Sequence record: PP712906.1 | Length of the DNA stretch: 64,000 bases | Direction: 5' to 3' (one strand) | Part shown: positions 20,313 through 34,854 of the stretch, one piece after another | How the letters are laid out: each line of letters begins with the position of its first letter | Numbering within the stretch: the stretch's first letter is position 1 | Made by a program: the position numbers and the translations under genes | The notes under the pieces: generated by a model | What the model saw: only the letters and a program-made list of their open reading frames with translations | What the model was told of the DNA's origin: nothing | The model's database searches: none

Positions 20313-23230
20313 GTTATTCTCTCATTGAGTACGTTTATCATGTATTTATGAAGATACAAAAAAAGCTCCCGAAGGAGCTTTTATTAACTTAGTAGTGCTT
20401 CTAGTCTAGCGATTCGTTCTTCAAGAGCTTCGCGTTTGCGCTTCTCTTCTTTGATACCCTCGATCAATAGACCAACCATATTTCCGTATGCAACTGCATA
20501 GTGACCATCAGCATCGCCACCGGATTCAACAACAGCTTCTGGTAGAACTTCAAGAACTTCTTGAGCAATTACACCAGTTTGTCGCGGACATTCAACGTCT
20601 GTACGGTCATATGTGTAACCATTCAGACGGTCAATCTTCTCAAGCGGATTTGTGATTCGCTCAACGTTAGTCTTGACTCGCGCATCCGAGTATGCTGTAA
20701 TATTACCAGCAGATTGAATGCTTTGATAGTAGTAGAAACCACTTGTCGCATCAGTTGAGTTATGAATCCATGATGTATTACGAGCTCCGAAATGCCATGT
20801 CTTCCCGTTGTCAGAACGAAAAAGCCAGCTACCTTCGTTTGCCGAGTTTTGCATATATCGTGTAGTATCGCCACCCAATGCAATGACGTTCTTAACCATC
20901 AGGTTACCGCCAGTCGTCAACGACATTGCCCCATCAGTCGCTGAGTCACCCTCATCACGCCACAAGAATCCACGATCCGTATCGTTGTTCATTGTGAACG
21001 TCATTGCGTAGTCATTCAACCAACCAAAGGATTGTGCGCTTGCCATGCCAATTGTATATGAACCACTAGACCACACTCGAATCTTATCATAAGAAGAAAC
21101 ACCAGTTGAGATCAATGTCCCATTGACTGTGAAGCTTCCATCAGAATGAGTATGATTGTGTGAATCATCCGCAACTGCAACAGATAATGTAACGTTTGCG
21201 CTACCGTCGATTGAAGCAGAACCACTCACATCGCCGTTCAGAGTCAGAGTACGAGCCGTAGTCCACTTATCTGCCAACGGGTGATAAGATGAGTTGTAGT
21301 TCGCACGCCATCCCGGTGAATATCCAGACCCATTATCAATGTATATGAATTCTTGTCTAGTTGTCGCACCAGAAGCAGTTGTCGGTGTAATAACTTTGAT
21401 TGTGCAGTTTGTTGTTGAAGTACCATGAACTTCAATCACAGAACCCGCAGTACCAAACACACCAAATCCAGTGTCTACCGTCACCTGAGCAGCATATGAC
21501 CAACTACCACGACATGTCCAATACCAAGTTGAGAACGCGCCTTGTGCAGACAGCAATGAAATAAATTCAGCAGTCGTTACTCGATTATTTGTCCCAAATG
21601 AAATTTGACCTGCACCGTTAGTGCCTGTAACCTCTTGAGGAGACCATGATACGTTCGCTGTACCGTTTACAGACTTGCCAGTTTTCCCGATTGTCAACGT
21701 ACGAGCAGTCGTCCACTTCGTCGCTTGTGTAGCTGAAGTCGCAGATGTCGCAGTCGTAGCGTTACCACTCAATTCCCCGATGAATGTCGGTGCTGTGATA
21801 TTGACAGTCGATGTAATTGAAGTACTATTAACCGAAAATTGTTTATTGTCAGCTAGTATACCACCGACGCCAAGAACAACCTCACCTGCCGTGTTTGAGT
21901 TGTGCAAATACACAGCAGTTCGGTTACCAATCAATCCAAATTTATCAACTTTAACCGTTTCAGATGCAGGAGCCGTATTGCCAGCAGAGTCAGTGATGAT
22001 CAATGATGAACTCATCGTATCACCAGTTTTCTGTACGTAGCCGCCGCCCGCAATAGGTGCGAATCTCGCGTCTGCTTCAGTCTCGGTGTAGTATCGACCA
22101 TCGTGCGTATGTGAGTCATTAGCAACCACAACAGACAAGGTAACGTTTGAGCTACCGTCGATTGAAGCAGAACCACTTACATCGCCGTTCAGAGTCAATG
22201 TTCTTGCAGTTGTCCACTTATCAGCCAATGGGTGATATTCATCATCAAAAATCTTCATCCACGCTGAACTAACACCAGACTCTCGACGCTTCCACCATAG
22301 ACGATTACTATTCTGACCCATAGCAAGAGTCATTGCATAACCGTTACCATTGTTGTGCTCAGTATGAACACCCCACATCCAACCAGTTTCTTCAGCAGGT
22401 TTACCCGTGATTGAGCTATTTACATCAATGAAACCGCTTCGTTGGTAATCATCAATGTCACCAGAAGATAGCTGCATCGAGCCGATTTTACCGCCAGATG
22501 TTCCACCAAAACCGTAAACCACGTTACTTGACTGAGCTTGTGTAGTAGGTACATTCAAGTAACCAGTCATCGTATCGCCAGTCGCGTTTACGAAACGAGC
22601 ATCAGATTCTGCTTCGGTGTAGTAACGACCATCGTGAGTATGAGAGTCGTCAGCAACTGTAACTGCGAGTGAAATATTCGAGCTACCATCAAACGAAACT
22701 GATCCACTAACATCACCAGATAACGTCAACGTTCTTGCAGTTGTCCACTTATCAGCTTCTGGGTGGTAGTCGGTGTGGTACATATAAACCCAGTCTTCCC
22801 ACACGTCTGAGTATCTCGTACGAAGTGCAATTGTACCTGAGTTGCCGCTTATACCATATGGGTAAGCAACTTGAGTCGCGTTAGTAGTCGAACCATATGT
22901 CATTGTCTGAGCATACCAGTAACCAGTAAACCCAGCAGGTCGATTTAGACCTTGTGATAACTTGTTGTAAAAGCCACCTCGATAAAGAGTATCCCAGTCA
23001 ACTGTGGTATCAACACCCGATAGAGTACGCCCCGTCGCGATATATTCAGGGTTACTTGCGCTCAGACCAACTTCAGCGTATGTTGTATGATTTGGAACAA
23101 CTGTATTGATAGTGACGTTTGAACTACCATCAATTGAAACTGAACCAGTTACTTCGCCTGATAGAGTAAGCGTTCTTGCAGTCGTCCATTTATCGGCATT
23201 TGGGTGATAGTTGTCTGCAAAAATTCGCTG
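18100..23230 (-). repeat. dispersed coding repeats in both tail fibres
   Basis: About 9 copies of (Y)HP.AD(K/T)WTTARTLT and 4 of DSHTHDGRYYTE.E.DARF, similar at DNA level. Confidence 0.9.
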
Positions 23231-23659
23231 CGTTGTGTTTAGATAACCAATACCGTTGATAACAACGTTGTTGTTTGATCTAGAACCGTACATTACAACC
23301 GATTCAGAATTCGATTCACGTCTGATAATCTGCCATTGATTTACATCGCCATCATAGTGATAACGAACCCCGTGATTTCCGTTGTCCTCAGTCAAGTATA
23401 GACTTGCATCGGTGCTTGCAGTACTGCTCAAGTGCAATTGCGCAGTCGATTTGGCGATTTGCAAATCGCCACTCATGACATCACCAGCACGTTTAACAAC
23501 AGACTCGGTTAAATCTGTATGCGGGTCTGGCTTGTCATTTTCTGTATAAAGTTTGTAGCCATTGTAAAGTACTGTTTCTCCTTGCGGATCGAAACGCAAA
23601 TTACCGCCATGCCAAACTATGTTACCGCCAATCGCGGTTGTTGAACGTAATTCTGCCAT
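20384..23659 (-). CDS. long tail fibre distal subunit (gp36/37-like) with peptidase S74 chaperone, copy 2
   Basis: Same 29-aa N-terminus as copy 1, SDARVKTNV motif; own late promoter (23698-23705) and terminator (20360-20383). Confidence 0.9.
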   Translation of the reverse strand: MAELRSTTAIGGNIVWHGGNLRFDPQGETVLYNGYKLYTENDKPDPHTDLTESVVKRAGDVMSGDLQIAKSTAQLHLSSTASTDASLYLTEDNGNHGVRYHYDGDVNQWQIIRRESNSESVVMYGSRSNNNVVINGIGYLNTTQRIFADNYHPNADKWTTARTLTLSGEVTGSVSIDGSSNVTINTVVPNHTTYAEVGLSASNPEYIATGRTLSGVDTTVDWDTLYRGGFYNKLSQGLNRPAGFTGYWYAQTMTYGSTTNATQVAYPYGISGNSGTIALRTRYSDVWEDWVYMYHTDYHPEADKWTTARTLTLSGDVSGSVSFDGSSNISLAVTVADDSHTHDGRYYTEAESDARFVNATGDTMTGYLNVPTTQAQSSNVVYGFGGTSGGKIGSMQLSSGDIDDYQRSGFIDVNSSITGKPAEETGWMWGVHTEHNNGNGYAMTLAMGQNSNRLWWKRRESGVSSAWMKIFDDEYHPLADKWTTARTLTLNGDVSGSASIDGSSNVTLSVVVANDSHTHDGRYYTETEADARFAPIAGGGYVQKTGDTMSSSLIITDSAGNTAPASETVKVDKFGLIGNRTAVYLHNSNTAGEVVLGVGGILADNKQFSVNSTSITSTVNITAPTFIGELSGNATTATSATSATQATKWTTARTLTIGKTGKSVNGTANVSWSPQEVTGTNGAGQISFGTNNRVTTAEFISLLSAQGAFSTWYWTCRGSWSYAAQVTVDTGFGVFGTAGSVIEVHGTSTTNCTIKVITPTTASGATTRQEFIYIDNGSGYSPGWRANYNSSYHPLADKWTTARTLTLNGDVSGSASIDGSANVTLSVAVADDSHNHTHSDGSFTVNGTLISTGVSSYDKIRVWSSGSYTIGMASAQSFGWLNDYAMTFTMNNDTDRGFLWRDEGDSATDGAMSLTTGGNLMVKNVIALGGDTTRYMQNSANEGSWLFRSDNGKTWHFGARNTSWIHNSTDATSGFYYYQSIQSAGNITAYSDARVKTNVERITNPLEKIDRLNGYTYDRTDVECPRQTGVIAQEVLEVLPEAVVESGGDADGHYAVAYGNMVGLLIEGIKEEKRKREALEERIARLEALLS

Positions 23660-23723
23660 TAGTTTCATTCCATTTATTGAAATTTTTCATATGACAGTAT
23701 TTATTATGCCGTAAAAAAGGGCG

Positions 23724-24254
23724 CTATTTGCGCCCCTTACGATTTGCCTTATTTGCTTTTCTTTTTGCTCTACGCAATTCTTTGCGTTTTGCGATTTTGT
23801 CTGCACGTCTAACTGCATCATAATCCGCAGCACACGACGCAGCAAACGCATCAGGCTTGAAAACGGGTTCTTGACCCACGTATCCCAAGATAGTGCCCTT
23901 AGCTTCGTTATACGCAACGTGTGAACGATGGGATGGGTCTGGGTTGATGTCAACGTGAACTTCAAACCCACGAGTACCACACATTGGCTTAACACGCAGA
24001 GCAGTTTCACCTGCTTTATAGACTTCATTCATCAAACGACTACGAATACCATCTTTACACGACATGTACGCTGGTTCAGTTTCGATAGATTTGAATACTT
24101 GAGCGCCTTTGCTACCCTCAAGGTGAATGATGATTACAGTAGCGTAACTAATCATATCACTCTTACGCTTGCTATCACACCCAACATAAATCGTACTGTT
24201 CGGATGACTGTTATTGATAGCTGTTTCAATTGCTTCCCAATCGAACATTTTCAC
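23724..24254 (-). CDS. RNase H-like YkuK family protein
   Basis: IYVGCDS, RL..EV, EVHVDIN motifs. Confidence 0.8.
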   Translation of the reverse strand: MKMFDWEAIETAINNSHPNSTIYVGCDSKRKSDMISYATVIIIHLEGSKGAQVFKSIETEPAYMSCKDGIRSRLMNEVYKAGETALRVKPMCGTRGFEVHVDINPDPSHRSHVAYNEAKGTILGYVGQEPVFKPDAFAASCAADYDAVRRADKIAKRKELRRAKRKANKANRKGRK

Positions 24255-25735: not shown

Positions 25736-25770
25736 TGTTTATTCCTCATATTAAATTGCTGTAAAATGTC
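25729..25770 (-). promoter_or_regulatory. 5'-leader CAGCAA-motif hairpin occluding RBS and AUG (copy A)
   Basis: GACAUUUUA-CAGCAA-UUUAAUAUGAGGAAUAAAC-AAUGUC; the 3' strand contains the start codon. Confidence 0.75.
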
Positions 25771-25784
25771 GTTTTGATGTGATG

Positions 25785-25813
25785 ATTATACACGGATTTG
25801 AACCTGTGTAAAC
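25785..25813 (-). promoter_or_regulatory. T4-type early promoter
   Basis: GTTTAC-17 nt-TATAAT with upstream A-tract. Confidence 0.8.
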
Positions 25814-26474: not shown

Positions 26475-26841
26475 CAATATATTCCTTAATCGGCTTAGAA
26501 AAGTGACGAATACAAGAACTGTCAAGTCGTTTACGACCATCACCATCTATATCAGGTAGTGTGTATTCGTCATTAAACGGCTGACCGCTTTCTTTCGCAA
26601 TCTCATAGGCATCGGCTCGATTGAAGTATTCACCACAATAGTTGATAAACCCTTGACCGCGATCCCCGAGTTCGTTTCGATGTTCATATGTACAACCTAG
26701 TTCTTTCAATAACTTAAAGACTGATTGCATGTTTCGACCGAAATGGCAGCTATCAGCAACAACAATGTCGCGCACTTCACCGTTCGGTAGTGTTACTCGA
26801 ATTGCATTAGCAGCAGACGATATTACATTGACGTGCGACAT
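26467..26841 (-). CDS. conserved phage hypothetical protein
   Basis: QGF...G.YFNR.DAY.IA..SGQ pattern. Confidence 0.7.
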   Translation of the reverse strand: MSHVNVISSAANAIRVTLPNGEVRDIVVADSCHFGRNMQSVFKLLKELGCTYEHRNELGDRGQGFINYCGEYFNRADAYEIAKESGQPFNDEYTLPDIDGDGRKRLDSSCIRHFSKPIKEYIDG

Positions 26842-27182
26842 GTATCGTACCTCATAAAAATTGAACCAACGCGCTTATACTGACCAGAGTGAGAAAGCAA
26901 CAGAGCCATTTTACTATGGCCAACGGGATTGCTTGTCACTAGAACAACAGTGCGCGGAAAATTACGATGATCAATCGCATGAGAGAGAATATCATACCCC
27001 TCTCTACCAACATCATCACCTAGGTCATTGTCCATGAATAGCGTGATGTCAGTTAGATTTGTGTGCTTGACAAAATTCATACCGTCTTCGAATGTACGAA
27101 GAACTAGCTTTTCATCGTCGCGTACATAATCTGACGTGTATTTGTCAATACTGCGAAGATCATCAATCATAACGTAGTACAT
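26823..27182 (-). CDS. cyclic-phosphate-processing receiver-like domain protein
   Basis: IDDLR, MDNDLG...GYD, TSNPVG motifs. Confidence 0.7.
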   Translation of the reverse strand: MYYVMIDDLRSIDKYTSDYVRDDEKLVLRTFEDGMNFVKHTNLTDITLFMDNDLGDDVGREGYDILSHAIDHRNFPRTVVLVTSNPVGHSKMALLLSHSGQYKRVGSIFMRYDTCRTSM

Positions 27183-27616: not shown

Positions 27617-27647
27617 AAGAAAAGCCCCGTTTTTGGGGCTTTTTTGT
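27617..27647. terminator. bidirectional terminator
   Basis: AAAAGCCCC-GTTTTT-GGGGCTTTTT. Confidence 0.75.
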
Positions 27648-27860
27648 TTAATGTGAGTGGCGTAACTTCTTTTCGATCATTCGATCTACAATCGTGGAGT
27701 ACATAAGATGCTCTTTGTAGTATTTCTCATCAACTCGGTTGCACTGGAATTGTCGAAAATCTTTGCGTAAGCGGGCAATGAATTTATTAAGTGCTTTGCG
27801 CACTTTGCAAACTTCAGACAGTTCCATGCTTTTTAGTGTATCTTCAGAAAGTATTTCCAT
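27648..27860 (-). CDS. hypothetical protein
   Basis: GAGGTG RBS. Confidence 0.65.
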   Translation of the reverse strand: MEILSEDTLKSMELSEVCKVRKALNKFIARLRKDFRQFQCNRVDEKYYKEHLMYSTIVDRMIEKKLRHSH

Positions 27861-27888
27861 GATTGTTCACCTCTTAGTTAATAGAATA

Positions 27889-27934
27889 CGGGAGACACGG
27901 GAATCGAACCCATTGCCTTGACCACATATCTCCC
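27889..27934 (-). ncRNA. 46-nt tRNA-like mini RNA (acceptor and T arm, no anticodon arm)
   Basis: GGGAGAU/GUCUCCC acceptor, AUGGG-UUCGAUU-CCCGU T arm, UGGUCAAGGC D-loop-like linker; no encoded CCA. Confidence 0.6.
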
Positions 27935-27958
27935 ACTGAGAGTTACGCCAATCTGATT

Positions 27959-28183
27959 TTAATGTGCTAGACTCATCAAACGGCGCATACGTTCGCGTTC
28001 TGAAAGCTCATCCAAATTATCTACTTTCACCTCTTTGACTTCTTCTTTCGGCTCTTCTGTCTCATCTGTTTTACGAGCACCGGGACCGATGTTTTTCCAA
28101 AGTGGACTATTGCGCCAGTTGTCGTTGAAACCATTGCCTAGACCACGCCCTTCGCGTGCGTGCGATTTGTTATGAATGCTCAT
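27959..28183 (-). CDS. hypothetical protein
   Basis: Coupled to the upstream gene. Confidence 0.65.
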   Translation of the reverse strand: MSIHNKSHAREGRGLGNGFNDNWRNSPLWKNIGPGARKTDETEEPKEEVKEVKVDNLDELSERERMRRLMSLAH

Positions 28184-28386
28184 TATTCGTTTGATTTCTT
28201 TGTTACTTGTCTTGCAATACCTACAGCAGCAGCACCAGCAGCTACTTTAGCACCTGTCTTTGCCGCTTTACCGGCTTTCTTTGCACCAGACTTGACACGA
28301 TCTTTGATAGAACGTTTCTTTTTCTTATCTTCTGGTCGAGATTCTTCAATTTCTGACATGAATTTGTCAAAGGTCTTTTCACTCAT
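28183..28386 (-). CDS. Lys/Ala-rich basic protein, putative internal head protein
   Basis: N-terminus MSEKTFDKFMSEIEE; ACTAAATA late-like promoter at 28417-28424. Confidence 0.6.
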   Translation of the reverse strand: MSEKTFDKFMSEIEESRPEDKKKKRSIKDRVKSGAKKAGKAAKTGAKVAAGAAAVGIARQVTKKSNE

Positions 28387-28423
28387 GACTTATCTCCAGT
28401 TAGTTGAGTTCATTTGTATTTAG

Positions 28424-28657
28424 TCATGAAAAATCGAACTTTCGGGTTAATTGCACATCAAATTTGCGCTCGAAACGACAACGCTCAGTACCGTAAAGCA
28501 CATCATCGAGCGTAAAGCGTTTACGTTTTTGTGTGTGTAGGTTCATATAACGCTCTAGAGCAGCTTCTGAGTCGAATTCAATACGTTCACAACGTCTTTG
28601 TTCGGATGTCTGAGAATAATCGCTTACAACGCGATACAGAAACAATCCGCGTATCAC
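28424..28657 (-). CDS. hypothetical protein
   Basis: GTG-start ORF. Confidence 0.55.
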   Translation of the reverse strand: MIRGLFLYRVVSDYSQTSEQRRCERIEFDSEAALERYMNLHTQKRKRFTLDDVLYGTERCRFERKFDVQLTRKFDFS

Positions 28658-28664
28658 AACTGCA

Positions 28665-28802
28665 TTAAGAGAATTTGAAGTTTTTTACAGTAACGCCGTC
28701 AATATCACCGAATTCACTCATGGTAAAGATGATCTCTGAGTCTGGCATTTCAGCGACGCGCTTCATTTTAGCTATTGATGTTCGTTTATTAGATTTGTAC
28801 AT
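28665..28802 (-). CDS. small hypothetical protein (45 aa; not in ORF track)
   Basis: GAGGTG RBS; MYKSNKRTSIAKMKRVAEMPDSEIIF... Confidence 0.55.
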   Translation of the reverse strand: MYKSNKRTSIAKMKRVAEMPDSEIIFTMSEFGDIDGVTVKNFKFS

Positions 28803-28888
28803 TTTATCACCTCATAACGACTGTACACGATTTATCAGACACCATAAACAAAAAAACCTGCTCAAGGCAGGTTTAGATGTGCAATACA

Positions 28889-29136
28889 CAGACATTCGAG
28901 AATTGTTTTATCGTCTTTCCTTAAATCTCAATTGACTATCTCGATGTTTCTCATCAAGAGAATACCCATGATTCGGCATGAGACCTATTTCGTTTAACAG
29001 TACGAGCACCGTCTTAATGGTCATTTCCTACCACGAGAATGCGACAGGCTCACGTCATCACTGAGAAAGCAGCTAGTGCGCCTCATTACTATTAAAGTTT
29101 GCTTCTTTGATTAGTAATAGTTGCTGTACAATGTCT
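28889..29136 (-). ncRNA. CAGCAA-motif RNA, large form (copy B)
   Basis: 5' AGACAUU-GUA-CAGCAA pairs with 3' AAUGUCU-G; starts 11 nt after tRNA-Ser CCA; paralogous to copy D. Confidence 0.7.
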
Positions 29137-29147
29137 TATTGCGAATT

Positions 29148-29236
29148 TGGCGGAGATACTGGGAATCGAACCCAGAGAACGCTATTAACGTCCGACACCT
29201 TAGCAGGGTGCTGTCATACCTTTAGACCATATCTCC
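29148..29236 (-). tRNA. tRNA-Ser(GCU)
   Basis: GGAGAUA/UAUCUCC, loop CUGCUAA, long variable arm, CCA. Confidence 0.95.
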
Positions 29237-29241
29237 GTAGA

Positions 29242-29421
29242 TCATTTCTTACCACGCTCTGCTTTGCTAATCTCGACAGCAGCGATTTGCGCGTTGGCTT
29301 CTTTCTCAGTGTCATGAGTACCAAGTACTCGACCTTTAGATGAAAGAGCAACCCATTTGTCGCCACGCTTCTCGACTTTCTCAACAAGCTTGTGATATTC
29401 ATCAAACGTTTTAAGTTTCAT
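29242..29421 (-). CDS. 59-aa putative internal head protein (not in ORF track)
   Basis: MKLKTFDEYHKLVEKVEKRGDKW...; TATAAATA at 29447-29454 and GAGGGA RBS. Confidence 0.75.
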   Translation of the reverse strand: MKLKTFDEYHKLVEKVEKRGDKWVALSSKGRVLGTHDTEKEANAQIAAVEISKAERGKK

Positions 29422-29471
29422 TTGTCATCCCTCAGTTAGTTTATTGTATTTATAACTGAACGACTTTTAAA

Positions 29472-29531
29472 CAGTGGCATGCTGCTCTCATGCTCAGACA
29501 CATATTTGCTCTTATTGCTGGCGTGTGCCAC
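29472..29531 (-). ncRNA. CAGCAA-motif RNA (copy C)
   Basis: GUGGCA-CACGC-CAGCAA ... UGCCAC-UG; spacing is 11 nt rather than 9. Confidence 0.55.
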
Positions 29532-29676
29532 GCGCTTCGCAGATCCCTTTTGATAATTTAACGACCAGCGGGACTCTTAGCAGGTCTACACATAGCCTTT
29601 CAGCTATATCTTCTTTTAAGACCATAGTGTCGTACGGTCTATTCACTCTCTTTCGATTCGCGTTGCTAAGTGAATT

Positions 29677-29753
29677 TGGTGCCCAACCCGAGATTCGAAC
29701 TCGGAACTTCTAGTGTTTGAAACTAGCGACTCTGCCAATTGGCCTAGTTGGGC
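29677..29753 (-). tRNA. tRNA-Leu(CAA), short variable arm
   Basis: GCCCAAC/GUUGGGC, loop UUCAAAC, CCA. Confidence 0.92.
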
Positions 29754-29870
29754 TTGAATAAGCTGCCGCAACTCTTTAATCCCTAACGCCTGTCAGCTTT
29801 CGCTCGGCTGAGACCGTTTTTTCAACGGCGGTAGTCTAGCTTCGTGTAGAACGCGGCTTATGCTAGAGTT

Positions 29871-29947
29871 TGGTACGCACGGGCGGATTCGAACCGCCAT
29901 CCCTGAGATTTTAAGCCTCATGCCTCTGCCAATTGGACCACGTGCGC
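29871..29947 (-). tRNA. tRNA-Leu(UAA), short variable arm
   Basis: GCGCACG/CGUGCGU, loop CUUAAAA, CCA. Confidence 0.92.
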
Positions 29948-29949
29948 AG

Positions 29950-30023
29950 TGGAGCCCGAACAGAGAATCGAACTCTGACCGCGGGATTTGCAATCCCTCA
30001 TACTTCCATTATACGATTCGGGC
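29950..30023 (-). tRNA. tRNA-Cys(GCA)
   Basis: GCCCGAA/UUCGGGC, loop UUGCAAA, U73, CCA. Confidence 0.94.
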
Positions 30024-30031
30024 AATTTGTT

Positions 30032-30125
30032 AGTGCATTGCATGGACTACTGGCGATCTTAATGGGTATCTCAAGCATTCAGAATTCCCATGCGCTACTA
30101 CAATGCTTTTTTCGCTAAATGCACT
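30032..30125 (-). ncRNA. structured spacer, possible divergent motif copy
   Basis: AGUGCAUU/AAUGCACU terminal stem followed by UAGCGAA instead of CAGCAA. Confidence 0.4.
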
Positions 30126-30126
30126 T

Positions 30127-30203
30127 TGGGGTGACAGACGGGGATCGAACCCGCATCTTCCGGAATCACAACCCGGGGGTATTTCCACTTCACCCACTGC
30201 CAC
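30127..30203 (-). tRNA. tRNA-His(GUG)
   Basis: GUGGCAG/CUGUCAC, loop UUGUGAU, C73, CCA; encoded -1 base is U. Confidence 0.94.
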
Positions 30204-30257
30204 ACCAAAGTACACTTTGGGATGTTTACGACATCAAACGAATGCGCTCCCTGTGCA

Positions 30258-30497
30258 TTAATCAGATTTCTTTAAGTAGATACTATCAGGCGATAGCTCT
30301 CTTGTAAACATATTTTTGAAATAAATTTCGATGTCATCAGAAGTTGTTGAAGACTCAATTTCAAGAGCACGTTCTAAAATCTTACCGCGTTTATAACCAG
30401 CGCGCCAACAGTCAAACATAAGCCTGTCCATGCGTTTCAGTTTTTCAATTTGGTTTTGATTTACGTATTCGTGAGTTTCAAGTAATACAGGCGTCAT
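30258..30497 (-). CDS. hypothetical protein
   Basis: ORF between tRNAs. Confidence 0.6.
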   Translation of the reverse strand: MTPVLLETHEYVNQNQIEKLKRMDRLMFDCWRAGYKRGKILERALEIESSTTSDDIEIYFKNMFTRELSPDSIYLKKSD

Positions 30498-30520
30498 AAT
30501 TTATTTCTCATCATAAAGAA

Positions 30521-30594
30521 TGGTAGTCCCTAGTGGAATCGAGCCACTTCTTTCTCTGTGTAAAAGAGACGTACTGCCATTATACTAAGGGACC
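30521..30594 (-). tRNA. tRNA-Val(UAC)
   Basis: GGUCCCU/AGGGACU, loop UUUACAC, T-loop begins with C, CCA. Confidence 0.92.
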
Positions 30595-30599
30595 AAAAT

Positions 30600-30673
30600 T
30601 GGAGCGGGTACACGGACTCGAACCGAGACGAACGACTTGGAAGGACGTCATGCTACCATTACATCATACCCGC
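30600..30673 (-). tRNA. tRNA-Gly(UCC)
   Basis: GCGGGUA/UACCCGC, loop CUUCCAA, U73, CCA. Confidence 0.94.
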
Positions 30674-30860
30674 ATTGTTAATCTGAAGCGTCGAACAAAT
30701 CACGTATTGCACGCAGATTCGTAAGCTCTACAGTAAGTGTTCTTATAAAGAACGGGTTGGTCTCTTTCGCGAGACGATTTTCAACACAGCGAATCTTATC
30801 GCGTATGTTGCCCTTGCTTAGTGTAAAGTAGTCATGCTTCTTATCCTCTTTGCTTGAATT

Positions 30861-30936
30861 TGGTGGAGACACCGATACTCGAAATCGGATCTAATGGCTT
30901 ATGAGACCATTGCTCTACCACTTGAGCTACATCTCC
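30861..30936 (-). tRNA. tRNA(CAU), probably elongator Met
   Basis: GGAGAUG/UGUCUCC, loop CUCAUAA, CCA. Confidence 0.88.
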
Positions 30937-30957
30937 AAAAGTAGTAATTAACTCATT

Positions 30958-31160
30958 TAATCGCACACGGGCTGACACCATATATTCATGGTCTGAGCGA
31001 GGAACCACATAGTGGGTACTATTACCTCATCTTAGTTTTGATTGTTTTACATGACGATAACTAGAAACGTTCATAATAATGCCACGCGATACTTCCTGTA
31101 TCACGGCTAACTGAGTTAGCATATCGTGCCTTTCGGCTGTAGTGTCGTTTCCGACGAATT
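30958..31160 (-). ncRNA. hairpin-rich non-coding spacer
   Basis: At least five hairpins, including GUCG-GAAA-CGAC, GCC-GAAA-GGC and CGUGAUAC/GUAUCGCG; no convincing ORF. Confidence 0.5.
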
Positions 31161-31165
31161 AAGTA

Positions 31166-31380
31166 CAGACAATACCGAAGTGTTTTTTCGTCTTTGACAT
31201 GAATCGGAGTTGACTATCTTGTTGCTTCTCAACAAGCAAATATCGTCTGCTTCAGCGACGCGCCTATCTGACTATTTCTAGGCAGAGAGAATCTTTCCTT
31301 TCAAGCTGCGCCGAAGCCACTGCCCAGGTGAAGATCATTACCATTTTTAAGTAATTTTAATTTGTTGCTGTATATTGTCT
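31166..31380 (-). ncRNA. CAGCAA-motif RNA, large form (copy D)
   Basis: AGACAAU-AUA-CAGCAA ... AUUGUCU-G; shares internal blocks with copy B. Confidence 0.7.
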
Positions 31381-31441
31381 CTCAAACCATGCTCGTGATA
31401 TGCCGAAGCAAGTATCATTCTTCGCATGATAGAGCTTAATT

Positions 31442-31517
31442 TGGCACGCCGTATGAGATTCGAACTCATAACCCCATCCTTAGAAGGGACGTGCTCTTCC
31501 AATTGAGCTAACAGCGC
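31442..31517 (-). tRNA. tRNA-Arg(UCU)
   Basis: GCGCUGU/ACGGCGU, loop CUUCUAA, CCA. Confidence 0.93.
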
Positions 31518-31594
31518 ATTGAAAAGAATTCGATCCATGAGCTATTGCGTAGAAGATGGTAGTAAAGAGACTCTACACTCATGTGATCGAAATT

Positions 31595-31669
31595 TGGTGG
31601 ACACGCAGGGAGTCGAACCCTATCTTCCTCATTGCAAGTGAGGCGCTTTCCCAATTAAGCTAACGGCCC
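31595..31669 (-). tRNA. tRNA-Ala(UGC), imperfect acceptor stem
   Basis: Loop CUUGCAA, G3:U70, CCA; lower acceptor needs a bulge to pair. Confidence 0.85.
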
Positions 31670-31676
31670 ATAATTA

Positions 31677-31886
31677 TTACAACTGTGTGATTGAAATATG
31701 ATCCCAGCCGTATAGACCTTCAAGCTCTTCAATCGGCTCACCAACAATATCAGAAATATATTCAGCAACTTTTGCTTCAATTTCTTCATCAGATAGTTTT
31801 TCATCAACAGAAAAAGCATCTTCGTTATTGTTGCCACCGAAATAGCCACCAATGTCATATTCACACCATATTGAAATATAATTCAT
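31677..31886 (-). CDS. acidic hypothetical protein (69 aa)
   Basis: Start MNYISIW with GAGAA RBS. Confidence 0.65.
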   Translation of the reverse strand: MNYISIWCEYDIGGYFGGNNNEDAFSVDEKLSDEEIEAKVAEYISDIVGEPIEELEGLYGWDHISITQL

Positions 31887-31911
31887 GTTATTCTCACAGT
31901 TGTTTAGAAAG

Positions 31912-31985
31912 TGGTGCCCCTGCTCAGAATCGAACTGAGATCGGATGCTTACAAGGCATCTGCTTGACCTTCCAGCTACAGAGGC
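31912..31985 (-). tRNA. tRNA-Thr(UGU)
   Basis: GCCUCUG/CAGGGGC, loop CUUGUAA, CCA. Confidence 0.93.
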
Positions 31986-31989
31986 GGTA

Positions 31990-32106
31990 CTGAGTGTTAT
32001 TACTTGCGTCGTCCAGACCAGTGATACCAACACTGAAAGGGAATCGAACCCTAAACATTTCTTTTCATCAGAAGAATATTAGTAAATTGTTTGCTGAAAA
32101 CACTCT
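31990..32106 (-). ncRNA. CAGCAA-motif RNA with permuted tRNA-like domain (copy E, YrlA-like)
   Basis: GAGUGUU-UU-CAGCAA ... AGGG-UUCGAUU-CCCU, UCAGUG/CACUGG closed hairpin, UGGA, AACACUC-AG. Confidence 0.75.
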
Positions 32107-32114
32107 ATGGTATT

Positions 32115-32188
32115 TGGCTGGGGATAACAGATTCGAACTGATACCAACGCATTCAAAGTACGTTATGCTGCCTTTACACCAATCCCCA
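32115..32188 (-). tRNA. tRNA-Gln(UUG)
   Basis: UGGGGAU/AUCCCCA, loop CUUUGAA, CCA. Confidence 0.94.
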
Positions 32189-32207
32189 ATTGTTCTTAAA
32201 TTATCTT

Positions 32208-32283
32208 TGGCGGAACCGACGGGTTTCGAACCCGCTACCTTCTCCGTGACAGGGAGACATGCAACCTTTTACACCTCGGCTCC
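32208..32283 (-). tRNA. tRNA-Asp(GUC)
   Basis: GGAGCCG/CGGUUCC, loop CUGUCAC, G73, CCA. Confidence 0.95.
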
Positions 32284-32354
32284 CCAAAGACAACTTAAAA
32301 GTAGTTGCTTTGTTTTTTTCAAGTCCACACTTAACGGTAGTGACTCTCCGAATT

Positions 32355-32430
32355 TGGCGCTTCATGTTGGACTCGAACCAACGACTCTCTGATTAACAGT
32401 CAGACACTCTACCAACTGAGTTAATGAAGC
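32355..32430 (-). tRNA. tRNA-Asn(GUU) copy 1
   Basis: GCUUCAU/AUGAAGC, loop CUGUUAA, CCA. Confidence 0.95.
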
Positions 32431-32431
32431 G

Positions 32432-32506
32432 TGGCGGGCGTGGAGAATTTCGAAATCTCGACTTGCAAGTTAACAGCTTGCTACTCTGCCTCTGAGTTAC
32501 ACACCC
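32432..32506 (-). tRNA. tRNA-Asn(GUU) copy 2
   Basis: GGGUGUG/CACGCCC, loop CUGUUAA, U:U at the base of the T loop, CCA. Confidence 0.9.
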
Positions 32507-32517
32507 TTGAATTTAAA

Positions 32518-32576
32518 CAGTAATCCTTTTTGCTTTTTCCAAATAAAAGTTTTGTATTGTTTGCTGTAAGATTACT
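32518..32576 (-). ncRNA. CAGCAA-motif RNA, minimal form (copy F)
   Basis: AGUAAUCU-UA-CAGCAA ... GGAUUACU-G; starts 5 nt after tRNA-Trp CCA. Confidence 0.72.
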
Positions 32577-32581
32577 TAAAC

Positions 32582-32655
32582 TGGCAGGGGCATAGAGATT
32601 CGAACTCTAACGAACGGGTTTGGAATCCGTCATGCTGCCTTTACATCATGCCCCT
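32582..32655 (-). tRNA. tRNA-Trp(CCA)
   Basis: AGGGGCA/UGCCCCU, loop UUCCAAA, G73, CCA. Confidence 0.92.
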
Positions 32656-32661
32656 AAAATT

Positions 32662-32735
32662 TGGTAGTCCCTAAGAGAATCGAACTCTTACCAAGCGATT
32701 ATCGGTCGCACGCTCTACCGTTGAGCTAAGGGACT
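32662..32735 (-). tRNA. tRNA-Ile(GAU)
   Basis: AGUCCCU/AGGGACU, loop CCGAUAA, CCA. Confidence 0.92.
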
Positions 32736-32798
32736 AAAGTGTGCGCATTTCAGCGCACTGTTAATCGGTTAAGTGACTAAACTTCCCGGTTAACTAAT

Positions 32799-32897
32799 TG
32801 GCGGAAGACTAGGGATTCGAACCCTAACATCACCTCCCGGTGACCGACGGTTTTCAAGACCGTTGCCGCTACCCAGAATCTTTCGGCTAAGCCTTCC
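32799..32897 (-). tRNA. tRNA-Ser(UGA), enlarged D loop
   Basis: GGAAGGC/GUCUUCC, loop CUUGAAA, long variable arm, 15-nt D loop, CCA. Confidence 0.9.
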
Positions 32898-32903
32898 TTT
32901 GTT

Positions 32904-32978
32904 TGGAAGCGAGTGCCAGAATCGAACTGACCTAGACTAGCTTATGAGACTAGTGAGTTCCCAGTACTCTTACTCGCA
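32904..32978 (-). tRNA. tRNA(CAU), initiator-like
   Basis: U1:U72 mismatch, loop CUCAUAA, CCA; lacks the three G-C pairs in the anticodon stem. Confidence 0.8.
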
Positions 32979-32979
32979 A

Positions 32980-33165
32980 TTATTTCGTATATTGAATCAG
33001 ACATGTATCTGATTGATAGATGAAAGTCCCTTCTGCCTTCTCGTCAACCTTAACGATGCAGCCGTTTGTACTCTTTTCAGCACGAGTTGATAGATCCGTT
33101 ACTGAAATGCCTGAACTACAAGCTGACAAACTTACTGCTAATACAAGTGCAAATAATGCTTTCAT
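32980..33165 (-). CDS. small lipoprotein
   Basis: Lipobox LSA-C after hydrophobic leader; GAAGG RBS. Confidence 0.75.
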   Translation of the reverse strand: MKALFALVLAVSLSACSSGISVTDLSTRAEKSTNGCIVKVDEKAEGTFIYQSDTCLIQYTK

Positions 33166-33186
33166 ATTACCTTCTCTTAAAAATTA

Positions 33187-33268
33187 CAGCTTGCGTTCTT
33201 TGGTCTATCAAGCGAATTCTGAATCAGACTTCGCACTACAGAGTAAGTTAAATTGCAGTATGCAAGCT
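33187..33268 (-). ncRNA. motif RNA (copy G, CUGCAA variant)
   Basis: AGCUUGC-AUA-CUGCAA ... GCAAGCU-G; starts 5 nt after tRNA-Tyr CCA. Confidence 0.68.
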
Positions 33269-33273
33269 AAAAT

Positions 33274-33360
33274 TGGTGGTTCGCCTAGGACTCGAACCTA
33301 GAAGCCCGTTAAGGGCGGGGGATTTACAATCCCTTGGCTTACCAATTAGCCTAACGAACC
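33274..33360 (-). tRNA. tRNA-Tyr(GUA)
   Basis: GGUUCGU/GCGAACC, loop UUGUAAA, long variable arm, CCA. Confidence 0.94.
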
Positions 33361-33717
33361 GATGTCTAATATACCAGCGTGTACTTCTCTATGACAATTT
33401 GCACAAAGCATCACACACTTGTCTAATTCGATTTTAGCGTTTTTAAAGCTAGACATTCGACCTTTATTTATCTCAAAGTCTTTACTATCAGGATCTTTGT
33501 GATGAAATTCCAGTGCGCTTATGCATCTATCGTAACCACAAGACTGACATTTTCCGCCCATGTACTCGACACAATCTGCTTTAAATTTTGCTCTATGTTC
33601 ATACACCTTAGCGTTACAGCAAGTTTTACAACTGCCTTCAATTCCGCTTTTAGTGTCGCTTCTTTTGTAATACTCAGTCAATGGCTTCATCGACTTGCAA
33701 GTAAAACATTCTTTCAT
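33346..33717 (-). mobile_element. free-standing HNH endonuclease
   Basis: Zn-binding CxxC pairs, LEFHH.D, KC..LCANCHREVH; 3' end overlaps tRNA-Tyr. Confidence 0.85.
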
Positions 33718-33784
33718 AACGTATCCTTTATTTATCAAGTGCTGTATCTCTACAGCGAAAGGTGCTACGCTATCAATTTAAAAA

Positions 33785-33859
33785 TGGTTCTCCCGACGAG
33801 ATTCGAACTCGCGCACTTCACCTTGAAAGGGTGATGACCTACCGTTAGTCCACGGGAGA
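33785..33859 (-). tRNA. tRNA-Glu(UUC)
   Basis: UCUCCCG/CGGGAGA, loop CUUUCAA, CCA. Confidence 0.93.
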
Positions 33860-34015
33860 ATTAAAAAGTATTTGTTAGCAAACTAGCAAGTTATCTGAGA
33901 TAATCATTTAACGAGCTCAGCTAGTAGGCTAACAGATACTCTTTCGAGTATTCATATCTAGTTTCTCACTTATTGCTTCAAAGTGACAGCTTATCTAGTT
34001 GCCTACGCTTAAATA

Positions 34016-34092
34016 TGGTACGCCGCCCTGGACTCGAACCAGACACCTGAGAGTTAAAAGCTCCCTGCTCTTCCATGATGAGCTACCGACGC
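34016..34092 (-). tRNA. tRNA-Lys(UUU) copy 1
   Basis: Loop CUUUUAA, G7:G66 mismatch, CCA. Confidence 0.9.
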
Positions 34093-34103
34093 ATTATAAA
34101 ATC

Positions 34104-34178
34104 TGGTGGGTCGCATGAGATTCGAACTCACACCGGTCTGGTTAAAAGCCAGATGTACTACCGTTATACGAACGACCC
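34104..34178 (-). tRNA. tRNA-Lys(UUU) copy 2
   Basis: GGGUCGU/GCGACCC, loop CUUUUAA, CCA. Confidence 0.94.
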
Positions 34179-34184
34179 AGAATG

Positions 34185-34259
34185 TGGTGCACCCCCTCGG
34201 AATCGAACCGAGCACTGCGGGACTTCAATCCGCCGCTTTTCCTGATAAGCTAAGGGTGC
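34185..34259 (-). tRNA. tRNA-Phe(GAA)
   Basis: GCACCCU/GGGGUGC, loop UUGAAGU, CCA. Confidence 0.9.
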
Positions 34260-34260
34260 A

Positions 34261-34337
34261 TGGTACGCATGAAGAGATTCGAACTCTTATCATTCGGCTT
34301 CTAAGACCGACGCCTCTGCCAATTGGGCTACATGCGC
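34261..34337 (-). tRNA. tRNA-Leu(UAG), short variable arm
   Basis: GCGCAUG/CAUGCGU, loop CUUAGAA, CCA. Confidence 0.92.
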
Positions 34338-34555
34338 ATTAAATTTTGTAAACTTCTTTTCTTCATTGTACATGATGTTTATATCGTTGTAAACATCTTT
34401 TTGAAATATTTTGAAGAACTTAACGTTTTCATTTCTATGTGTTAATATTAACACTCGCTCAAGACATCTTAAACACTAATTTGTGAAAAAGTTCGTTAAA
34501 TTCTATCATCACGACAGTACTTAACGAGATACGGTCCTAAGCGTATCATATCAAT

Positions 34556-34681
34556 TCAGAATGGTGAGACTTGAACTCACTTCGAGTAATAGCGTAAACT
34601 AACAGTTGTTGCCAGAGGCTATCAATTATTCTCTACCGAGTATGTTGCAACTCTGCATTTCCCCATTTCTAGGCATTCTGA
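34556..34681 (-). ncRNA. 126-nt tRNA-like element with expanded core
   Basis: UCAGAAUG/CAUUCUGA terminal stem and GUGAG-UUCAAGU-CUCAC T arm; no CCA and no clear anticodon arm. Confidence 0.5.
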
Positions 34682-34685
34682 AATA

Positions 34686-34761
34686 TGGCACCCCACAGAA
34701 GATTCGAACTTCTAACCTGCGCCTTCGTAGGACGCTGCTCTTCCAATTGAGCTAGTAGGGC
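34686..34761 (-). tRNA. tRNA-Arg(ACG)
   Basis: GCCCUAC/GUGGGGU, loop CUACGAA, CCA. Confidence 0.93.
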
Positions 34762-34768
34762 ATTAAAC

Positions 34769-34845
34769 TGGTCCGTGACAAGCGATTCGAACGCTTAACT
34801 TCTCCGCCCCAAACGGAGTACTCTACCAGATTGAGCTAGTCACGG
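34769..34845 (-). tRNA. tRNA-Pro(UGG) copy 1
   Basis: CCGUGAC/GUCACGG, loop UUUGGGG, CCA. Confidence 0.94.
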
Positions 34846-34854
34846 ATTTTAAAT

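Follow-up and report, generated by a model that had tools for sequence, protein, structure and literature searches.

The window analysed here, a 64,000-nucleotide (nt) stretch of sequence record PP712906.1, carries within a large transfer RNA (tRNA) operon two long RNAs, B (248 nt) and D (215 nt), which share their terminal sequences and a covarying 3' domain, and which belong to a widespread phage family of motif-bearing RNAs linked to the gene for a Ro60-like protein. Ro60, together with its Y RNAs, has been found in animals and bacteria and in a small number of phages. As the family always occurs with the gene for a divergent Ro60 homolog, we consider B and D to be paralogous structured members of a Ro60-partnered phage RNA family and functional counterparts of Y RNAs, in which the 3' domain would act as a docking module; we assign this reading a probability of roughly 60%.

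The window region matches Vibrio phage TCU-VP03-AIR1 at 100% identity and the T4-type Schizotequatrovirus KVP40 at 97.6%. B lies 11 nt past tRNA-Ser(GCU), as the last element of the operon before its terminator, and D occupies a spacer flanked by tRNA-Arg(UCU) and tRNA-Met; the two RNAs are 3.2 kb and 5.4 kb upstream, respectively, of the Ro60-like gene, with which they share a strand (Table 1). B reads AAG-ACAUU-G-UACAGCAA at its 5' end and AAUGU-CUGU at its 3' end, and D reads GAG-ACAAUA-UACAGCAA and UAUUGU-CUGU, such that the two ends of each RNA pair in a terminal stem, P1. A first-pass annotation, made from the letters of the sequence, had placed both RNAs correctly to within 1-2 nt. P1 covaries among the D orthologs, which carry GACAAUA/UAUUGUC, GAUAAU/AUUAUC (phage 1.081.O) or GGCAAU/AUUGCC (phage F86). 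Orthologs of B occur in 32 phage records and are annotated in none of them, and those of D occur in 50 records, with no RNA annotation in any (0/50) and an overlapping 'hypothetical protein' coding sequence in some.

A covarying 3' domain shared by B and D

B and D align by blastn over 78 nt of their 3' parts with 75.6% identity (E value 7.7e-9), and their local alignment score of 59 compares with 17.7 +/- 2.3 (maximum 36) in 1000 shuffles. Their common part consists of the 5' G-stem with UACAGCAA, the 3' stem with CUGU, and a 3' domain of about 115 nt. The central regions of the two RNAs fail to align, in keeping with the first-pass annotation, which had described them as different. All of the conserved blocks that it listed are present in both RNAs, among them AAAGACGA.AAAACA.UUC, at a similarity beyond chance, and the shared part proved larger than it had reported, also including AUAGG followed by a hairpin with a GCYGAA-type loop (Pa), and a helix that closes the A-rich block (Pc).

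The middle hairpin of the domain, Pb, differs between B and D by a compensatory A-U to U-A swap. Pc is formed by GAGA/UCUC in B, by GUGA/UCAC in the B of phage D480, and by CCG/CGG, GCG/CGU or GCG/CGC in D, and it makes the invariant AUUyAwG..AAAGACGAwAAAACA a large hairpin loop beside the 3' strand of P1. The invariant unpaired stretches of the domain are AUAGUCAA and AAAGACGAwAAAACA. In an alignment of the last 125 nt of 20 B/D sequences from ten related phages, 93.2% of the cells in Pa, Pb and Pc were paired, compared with 27-43% when the partners were slid by 1-3 columns. Moreover, both sides had changed in 73% (11/15) of the pairs, with compensatory changes in all three helices, and the covariation score of 0.62 was reached by none of 500 shuffles and stood against at most 0.125 in controls. 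A further hairpin after CAGCAA (P2), which the first-pass annotation had described as AUUAC/GUAAU in both RNAs, holds as a structure in D, where all orthologs keep it with varying sequences such that P2 covaries; in B it does not extend outside the KVP40/ValKK3 subgroup.

The orthologs were taken from KVP40, VH7D, ValKK3, phi-Grn1, VS2, nt-1, CZ01 and the more distant D480 and F86, all nine of which keep both RNAs together with the shared domain, and from the likewise more distant 1.081.O, in which D alone has the domain. The first-pass annotation had named a lack of conservation of the blocks in related phages as grounds for rejecting its inference; as they are conserved, its view of B and D as a separate large subclass carrying a further module is supported, the second module being conserved and structured, with three covarying helices. 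A covariance model of the 3' domain (R2) found exactly two copies each in the window, D480 and F86, one in 1.081.O, and none among 75 other loci. This distribution indicates that the module arose by duplication within the KVP40-type lineage, to which the domain is confined.

The first-pass annotation had offered either a second binding site or a catalytic module for the shared domain, and had pointed to large phage RNAs such as GOLLD and ROOL for comparison. Scans with Rfam covariance models, at gathering scores and, over positions 27800-37000, at E values up to 10, matched B and D to no family, whether GOLLD, ROOL, ribozymes or any other. A self-contained catalytic RNA would suit a conserved multi-helix fold with invariant unpaired nucleotides, placed in a polycistronic transcript that needs cleavage. 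We nevertheless consider a ribozyme very improbable, given this lack of a match and the restriction of the domain to one phage lineage; moreover, host RNases process tRNA operons without ribozymes. By analogy with Y RNAs, which are built of two modules, the 3' domain may plausibly be a second binding site.

The same conservation bears on whether B and D are functional at all. Their lack of annotation, or 'hypothetical protein' labels in a few records, and the homing endonuclease genes scattered through tRNA clusters of this kind would fit non-functional leftovers, be it a duplicated spacer, the remains of a mobile element or small protein genes that escaped recognition. This seems to us scarcely credible in view of compensatory changes in four or five helices, the retention of the RNAs across phages whose Ro60-like proteins are only about 70-82% identical to that of the window (D480, F86 and 1.081.O), and the absence of any open reading frame (ORF) of at least 40 amino acids (aa) inside B or D.

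A motif-RNA family encoded beside Ro60-like protein genes

Pfam assigned DUF2828 and DUF7788 to the product of the Ro60-like gene at E values of 1e-45 and 9e-30, and did not assign PF05731 (TROVE). Its AlphaFold (AF2) model, with a mean confidence (pLDDT) of 74.6, is predicted to form a helical-repeat ring followed by a von Willebrand factor A (vWA) domain bearing a MIDAS (metal-ion-dependent adhesion site) motif, the architecture of Ro60/TROVE proteins. When this model was compared with PDB structures using Foldseek, the top eight matches were all Ro60/TROVE proteins over the full length, with vWA domains next. These eight gave template-modelling (TM) scores of 0.50-0.55 over about 510-580 columns (the best ones 0.53-0.55, E value 1e-6), at an identity to Ro60 of about 13-15% in the structural alignment, and the best match was phiRo60 of Thermus phage phiLo. 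Residues D275, S277 and S279 of the MIDAS motif (DVSGS) are invariant. The KVP40 ortholog is named 'RNA-binding protein' in RefSeq and mycobacteriophage homologs are annotated 'Ro-like'. This DUF2828 branch occurs in 710 cultured phage genomes, including Felixounaviruses and the phages of Listeria and Staphylococcus employed in biocontrol, and DUF2828 proteins are also found in mimivirus-like sequences.

We fetched 80 viral contigs encoding proteins 46-55% identical to the Ro60-like protein of the window. In about 20 of the 80, two ACAGCAA motifs follow right after the stop codon on the gene's strand, the first in an RNA of about 60 nt and the second in one of 170-262 nt. Across an alignment of 28 small members, P1 was 83% paired, compared with 35-48% in slid registers, with double changes in 6 of 8 pairs and a G-C closing pair in every member (28/28). 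A covariance model built from this alignment (R1) produced 111 matches (E value at most 1) in 1.4 Mb, of which 110 lay on the strand of the DUF2828 gene. Matches at E values of at most 0.01 were obtained in 71% (57/80) of the viral loci, mostly directly 3' of the gene and many of them outside the seed, while in bacterial and archaeal genome-assembly contigs 29 of 30 matches fell on the gene's strand, often in arrays just upstream of it. R1 matches also adjoin the gene in Listeria phage LMSP-25 (two copies), Campylobacter phage PC14, the E. coli Felixounavirus garuso (two copies, in a tRNA cluster) and mycobacteriophage Faith1.

B and D show all of the family features, namely P1 with its G-C closing pair, xUACAGCAA after the 5' strand, YGU after the 3' strand, and placement on the DUF2828 strand; R1 scores weakly on their 5' halves (16.6 and 17.1 bits, respectively) because it cannot span inserts of 200 nt. 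The protein neighbours of the Ro60-like gene in the window (an RNase H-like protein of PF04308, a cyclic-phosphate-processing receiver (cREC) and small ORFs) are not kept with DUF2828 outside the KVP40 lineage, leaving the RNA and the protein as the conserved pair. No partner RNA with this motif has been described for the DUF2828 branch in Rfam 15 or in the literature searched, and searches on DUF2828, on the motif string and on Dictyostelium with TROVE returned nothing relevant. The motif-RNA family is undescribed in Rfam and in the searchable literature, and B and D are new, unannotated members of it.

The string TTGCTGTA is over-represented in the window, with 9 sites against 2.5 expected, and the window holds five motif copies plus one in the mRNA leader of the Ro60-like gene. 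The 82-nt copy is kept in VH7D, nt-1 and KVP40. The leader copy, a miniature of 36 nt, covers the Shine-Dalgarno sequence and the start codon of the Ro60-like ORF, with the start codon in its 3' strand, and a promoter matching the sigma-70 consensus would start the mRNA a few bases ahead of this hairpin. Similar mini hairpins sit just 5' of the ribosome-binding site or overlap it in nt-1, VH7D, 1.081.O and F86 and in four distant contigs (L033, L049, L052 and L067), such that the leader mimic occurs in at least eight lineages. The leader hairpin is likely an autoregulatory site, as expected of autogenous translational control, for which T4 gp32, RegA and ribosomal proteins provide precedents.

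The occurrence of the module at such sites also bears on the possibility that B and D act in cis as elements for the processing or stability of the tRNA operon, providing RNase docking or 3' protection with no dedicated protein partner. Such a role would agree with the location of both RNAs inside the tRNA operon, B directly behind its last tRNA and ahead of the terminator, and with their syntenic positions in related phages. However, the P1/UACAGCAA module adjoins the DUF2828 gene where no tRNA is nearby, as in Faith1 and many viral contigs, and is also found on the gene's own leader, which ties it to the protein rather than to the tRNAs, and we judge a purely cis-acting role decidedly unlikely.

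Large motif RNAs also exist elsewhere in the family. At L008:11509-11744 and about 23 other uncultured-virus loci, a motif RNA of 170-262 nt follows a small one 3' of the DUF2828 gene; L004:11504-11756 and L019:11492-11721 are among these loci. These RNAs have a conserved core of their own with a covarying UUCU-GCCG-AGAA hairpin and end at a terminator, while RNAalifold on a MAFFT alignment of them recovered little beyond P1. A common origin with B and D, considered on account of an AAGACG...AAAA block, was rejected (best R2 score 15 bits, E value about 5), and as R2 finds none of the metagenomic large RNAs we treat them as a separate large subclass. A fifth type of insert, 95-132 nt long and containing ..AAGAACCUUUCUGGAGGGGAAAGCAAAAACUCGCC.., lies between the motif and the 3' strand at L033:149-280, L038:3133-3232, L049:1265-1373 and L052:8964-9058. 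Phage-encoded transfer-messenger RNA genes stand a few kb from the DUF2828 gene and its RNAs at L041:15748-16165 (88 bits) and L034:8605-9054 (75 bits).

Several other features of the window were recorded. The RNase H-like gene (23724-24254, minus strand) is directly downstream of the Ro60-like gene and the cREC gene (26823-27182, minus strand) is upstream of it, both in the KVP40 lineage only; related phages carry a 2H/LigT-type 'RNA ligase' past the tRNA cluster. Within the cluster, an unusually long tRNA-like match of 113 nt occupies 35558-35670 (minus strand), such elements being listed as tRNA pseudogenes in the KVP40 annotation, and the tRNA-Ser at 32803-32897 (minus strand) also matches a tRNA-Sec-like model below threshold. 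A strong bidirectional terminator-like hairpin is found at 27618-27645 (both strands) between convergent small ORFs, and a tail-fibre ORF of 1094 aa (20384-23668, minus strand) holds four internal repeats of HPxADKWTTARTLTLxGxVxGSxSxDGSxNV.

Table 1. Features of the B/D RNAs, the Ro60-like gene and the tRNA operon, in window coordinates
Feature	Position	Strand	Details
RNA B, large motif RNA	28888-29137	-	248 nt from G to U; sequence and motif scan
B ends	AAG 29137-29135; UACAGCAA 29128-29121; CUGU 28891-28888	-	
B stem P1	29135-29130 with 28896-28891	-	GACAUU pairs with AAUGUC
B shared 3' domain	28888-29012	-	alignment and pair counts; model R2, 118 bits
B hairpin Pa	28965-28982	-	loop CCGAAU
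B hairpin Pb	28940-28958	-	CUUGAUG-AGAAA-CAUCGAG; then AUAGUCAA at 28932-28939
B helix Pc	28926-28930 with 28897-28901	-	closes loop carrying AAAGACGAUAAAACA
RNA D, large motif RNA	31165-31381	-	215 nt from G to U; sequence and motif scan
D ends	UACAGCAA 31372-31365; CUGU 31168-31165	-	
D stem P1	31379-31373 with 31174-31168	-	GACAAUA pairs with UAUUGUC
D shared 3' domain	31165-31289	-	alignment and pair counts; model R2, 138 bits
D hairpin Pa	31244-31260	-	loop GCUGAAGCA
D hairpin Pb	31218-31236	-	CUUGUUG-AGAAG-CAACAAG; then AUAGUCAA at 31210-31217
D helix Pc	31204-31207 with 31175-31178	-	closes loop carrying AAAGACGAAAAAACA
Ro60-like gene, 478 aa	24299-25735	-	DUF2828 + DUF7788; predicted TROVE-like helical ring and vWA; DxSxS motif
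Mini motif copy, 36 nt	25737-25772	-	GACAUU-UUACAGCAA-uuuaauauGAGGAauaaac-AAUGUC; mRNA leader of Ro60-like gene
Sigma-70-like promoter (putative)	25785-25812	-	TTTACA-16-TATAAT, 11/12 match; consensus match only
Intrinsic-terminator-like hairpin and T run	28854-28874	-	14 nt past end of B; closes tRNA/RNA operon
tRNA cluster, 28 genes	29148-36840	all -	B, D and small motif copies embedded on same strand
Degenerate small copy, 61 nt	29471-29531	-	GUGGCA-cacgCCAGCAA...UGCCAC-UGU; R1 20.9 bits, E value 7e-4 in local search
Weak sixth candidate	32068-32109	-	15 bits
Small motif RNA, 59 nt	32517-32575	-	GUAAUC-UUACAGCAA...GAUUAC-UGU; R1 52.1 bits
Mid-size motif RNA, 82 nt	33186-33267	-	variant UACUGCAA; 6 nt after tRNA-Tyr; R1 29.6 bits

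Relation to Y RNAs, Class I RNAs and other phage RNAs

Published work has reported likely Y RNAs close to Ro60 genes in over 250 species of bacteria and phages (PMC4201824). B and D resemble the bacterial YrlA RNAs (RF02553) in having a Ro60-type gene close by on the same strand, paired ends that would form the handle, a variable second module, and several paralogs per genome. Furthermore, the family itself includes members with a tRNA-like part: at L034:11911-12035 and L034:12392-12542, a YrlA-type insert (T arm, closed acceptor hairpin and D arm) lies between the motif and the 3' strand and matches RF02553 at 38 and 34.8 bits (E values of about 1e-6 to 1e-5 locally). These two RNAs are arrayed together with true tRNAs and small motif RNAs. 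Such inserts give the family the modular build of Y RNAs, a terminal handle joined to an exchangeable second module. The small form lacks this second module; in other members it is a tRNA-like part, the domain of B and D, the large domain of the metagenomic RNAs or the fifth insert type.

A phage system of this kind has been characterised in phiLo, whose phiRo60 protein binds two phage Y-like RNAs together with the host PNPase, to which the RNAs bind as well (PMC12135203; PDB 9L5Y, 9KOP). The likeness to B and D is that of a phage-encoded Ro60 with two paralogous partner RNAs, which in phiLo adjoin the gene; in contrast, Yrl1 and Yrl2 of phiLo were chosen by a 'CGAA' bulge and a stem-bulge-stem shape, the ACAGCAA motif is unreported for them (PMC12135203), and nothing in them corresponds to the B/D 3' domain. 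In Bas63, the gene for the Ro60-like protein gp130 lies just upstream of the phage tRNAs, and gp130 has been reported to counteract the Ppl defence system (bioRxiv 10.1101/2024.10.10.617714).

Several observations weigh against regarding B and D as Y RNA counterparts. Their handle is a short perfect stem with a single-stranded UACAGCAA and a CUGU tail, unlike the bulged helix of the canonical Ro-binding terminus in Y RNA and YrlA and unlike the YrlA consensus ends, and a cmscan at E values up to 10 found no tRNA-like domain (T arm, closed acceptor stem and D arm) in either RNA; on these two grounds we do not file them as YrlA, from which they also differ in that their presumed partner is a protein of the DUF2828 branch. 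KVP40-type phages keep the RNAs 3-6 kb away from the Ro60-like gene rather than adjoining it. The covariation in the 3' domain largely splits B from D and sets apart D480, F86 and 1.081.O, and as the double changes mostly separate a few lineages, the independent covariation events are modest in number. In 1.081.O, the 3' domain is missing from the B-like RNA. The motif also varies, being UACUGCAA in F86 and UACCGCAA and UUUCAGCAA in 1.081.O. Finally, the stability of the single sequences is unremarkable and folding energies are uninformative, with z scores of -1.2 for B and -0.9 for D.

The only Rfam family approached by the motif RNAs was RF01414 (Dicty_Class_I_RNA). Five independent phage RNAs matched it over the full model length, the 59-nt copy of the window at 31.8 bits and four others at 27-31 bits; no phage copy reached the gathering score of 41.5 bits, and B and D gave no match. 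Class I RNAs, reported as unique to Dictyostelia, start with AAG, and their invariant 5' G pairs with the C of a CUGU at the 3' end; the stem is short and covaries, the 11-nt motif beside the 5' strand is most conserved at positions 6, 9, 10 and 11, and the loop is variable (PMC7919456). The RNA recognition motif (RRM) protein Rnp1A is their only known direct binder (PMC7919456). The phage small form shows each of these structural features, with the same conserved motif positions and a variable loop rich in A. In B and D the start, the motif, the stem and the tail are retained: the 5' G pairs with the C of CUGU (G29135-C28891 in B, G31379-C31168 in D), followed in each by UGU, and the 11-nt motif, CCUUACAGCAA in the Rfam consensus, follows the 5' strand (B uuGUACAGCAA, D auAUACAGCAA, 8/11; small copy, 10/11). 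B and D differ in length, being 4-5 times longer than Class I RNAs (42-65 nt), and in context, as these phage RNAs sit in a tRNA operon rather than about 60 nt downstream of a DUSE promoter element in a dictyostelid genome.

With sub-threshold RF01414 scores and an RRM protein as the binder, we treat the Class I resemblance as a lead and not as membership. That the phage P1/UUACAGCAA/CUGU RNAs are of the same kind as the dictyostelid Class I RNAs, either as relatives or as ligands of related proteins, is a tentative idea that we hold to be possible but on balance doubtful; the presence of DUF2828 in mimivirus-like sequences hints at a path by which the worlds of phages and amoebae might connect. 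If the idea were true, Class I RNAs would extend beyond the Dictyostelia, their long-sought function would be to partner a TROVE/vWA protein in the manner of Y RNAs, and a Class I-type scaffold would be seen, in B and D, to be able to bear large add-on modules.

For the look-alike Class I RNAs, a role as sponges has been put forward (PMC7919456), and the phage RNAs might likewise be mainly decoys that soak up a factor of the host, for instance an RNA-binding protein or a nuclease of its defences, with the Ro60-like protein only stabilising them. The several copies per genome, five plus the leader copy here, and the anti-defence activity of the Bas63 homolog (bioRxiv 10.1101/2024.10.10.617714) would accord with such a role. 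We regard it as rather unlikely to be the principal one, and it overlaps with a Y RNA-like function rather than excluding it.

B and D also recall ROOL and GOLLD as large, structured, unannotated RNAs inside phage tRNA clusters; they differ in being half the size or less, in being defined by the P1/UACAGCAA handle, and in showing no sequence or structure match. As a positive control, the ROOL model found a ROOL-like RNA in Listeria phage LMSP-25 (L092) at 88.5 bits (gathering score 99.1; E value 1.5e-16). In that phage, the tRNA cluster contains the ROOL-like RNA (3470-4021) and a drum RNA (983-1081, above its gathering score), about 1 kb upstream of the DUF2828 gene and its two tandem motif RNAs, with RtcB-like and RNA ligase genes downstream. 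In T4, species 1 and 2 (rnaC and rnaD) are stable non-tRNA RNAs of unknown function that are co-transcribed and processed with the tRNA operon. They resemble B and D in being non-tRNA RNAs in the tRNA operon of a T4-type phage, and we know of no Ro60-like gene in T4.

A model for B and D and its implications

Combined with the linkage of the motif to the DUF2828 gene, these observations suggest the following model for B and D as Y RNA counterparts. Host tRNA-processing nucleases would release the two RNAs from the tRNA operon transcript, and the Ro60-like protein would bind the P1/UACAGCAA/CUGU handle, as the linkage of gene and RNA and the mimic in the leader suggest. The miniaturised handle over the ribosome-binding site and start codon may let the protein repress its own translation. 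The 3' domain of about 115 nt, inherited from the duplication, would most likely dock another factor or substrate at the Ro60-like ring, by analogy with the effector modules of Y RNAs; candidates include PNPase or another exoribonuclease of the host, an enzyme of RNA repair, or damaged RNA. Each paralog would owe a specificity of its own to its divergent central region.

The general principle of a phage Ro60 with partner RNAs is already known (PMC12135203). The present analysis supplies a likely partner RNA for the very common DUF2828 branch, with a simple searchable signature and a likely autoregulatory leader, and B and D exemplify how its scaffold is extended by a lineage-specific structured module. 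The family thereby offers a handle for testing phage Ro60-like ribonucleoproteins, and the puzzle of the Dictyostelium Class I RNAs becomes a testable hypothesis.

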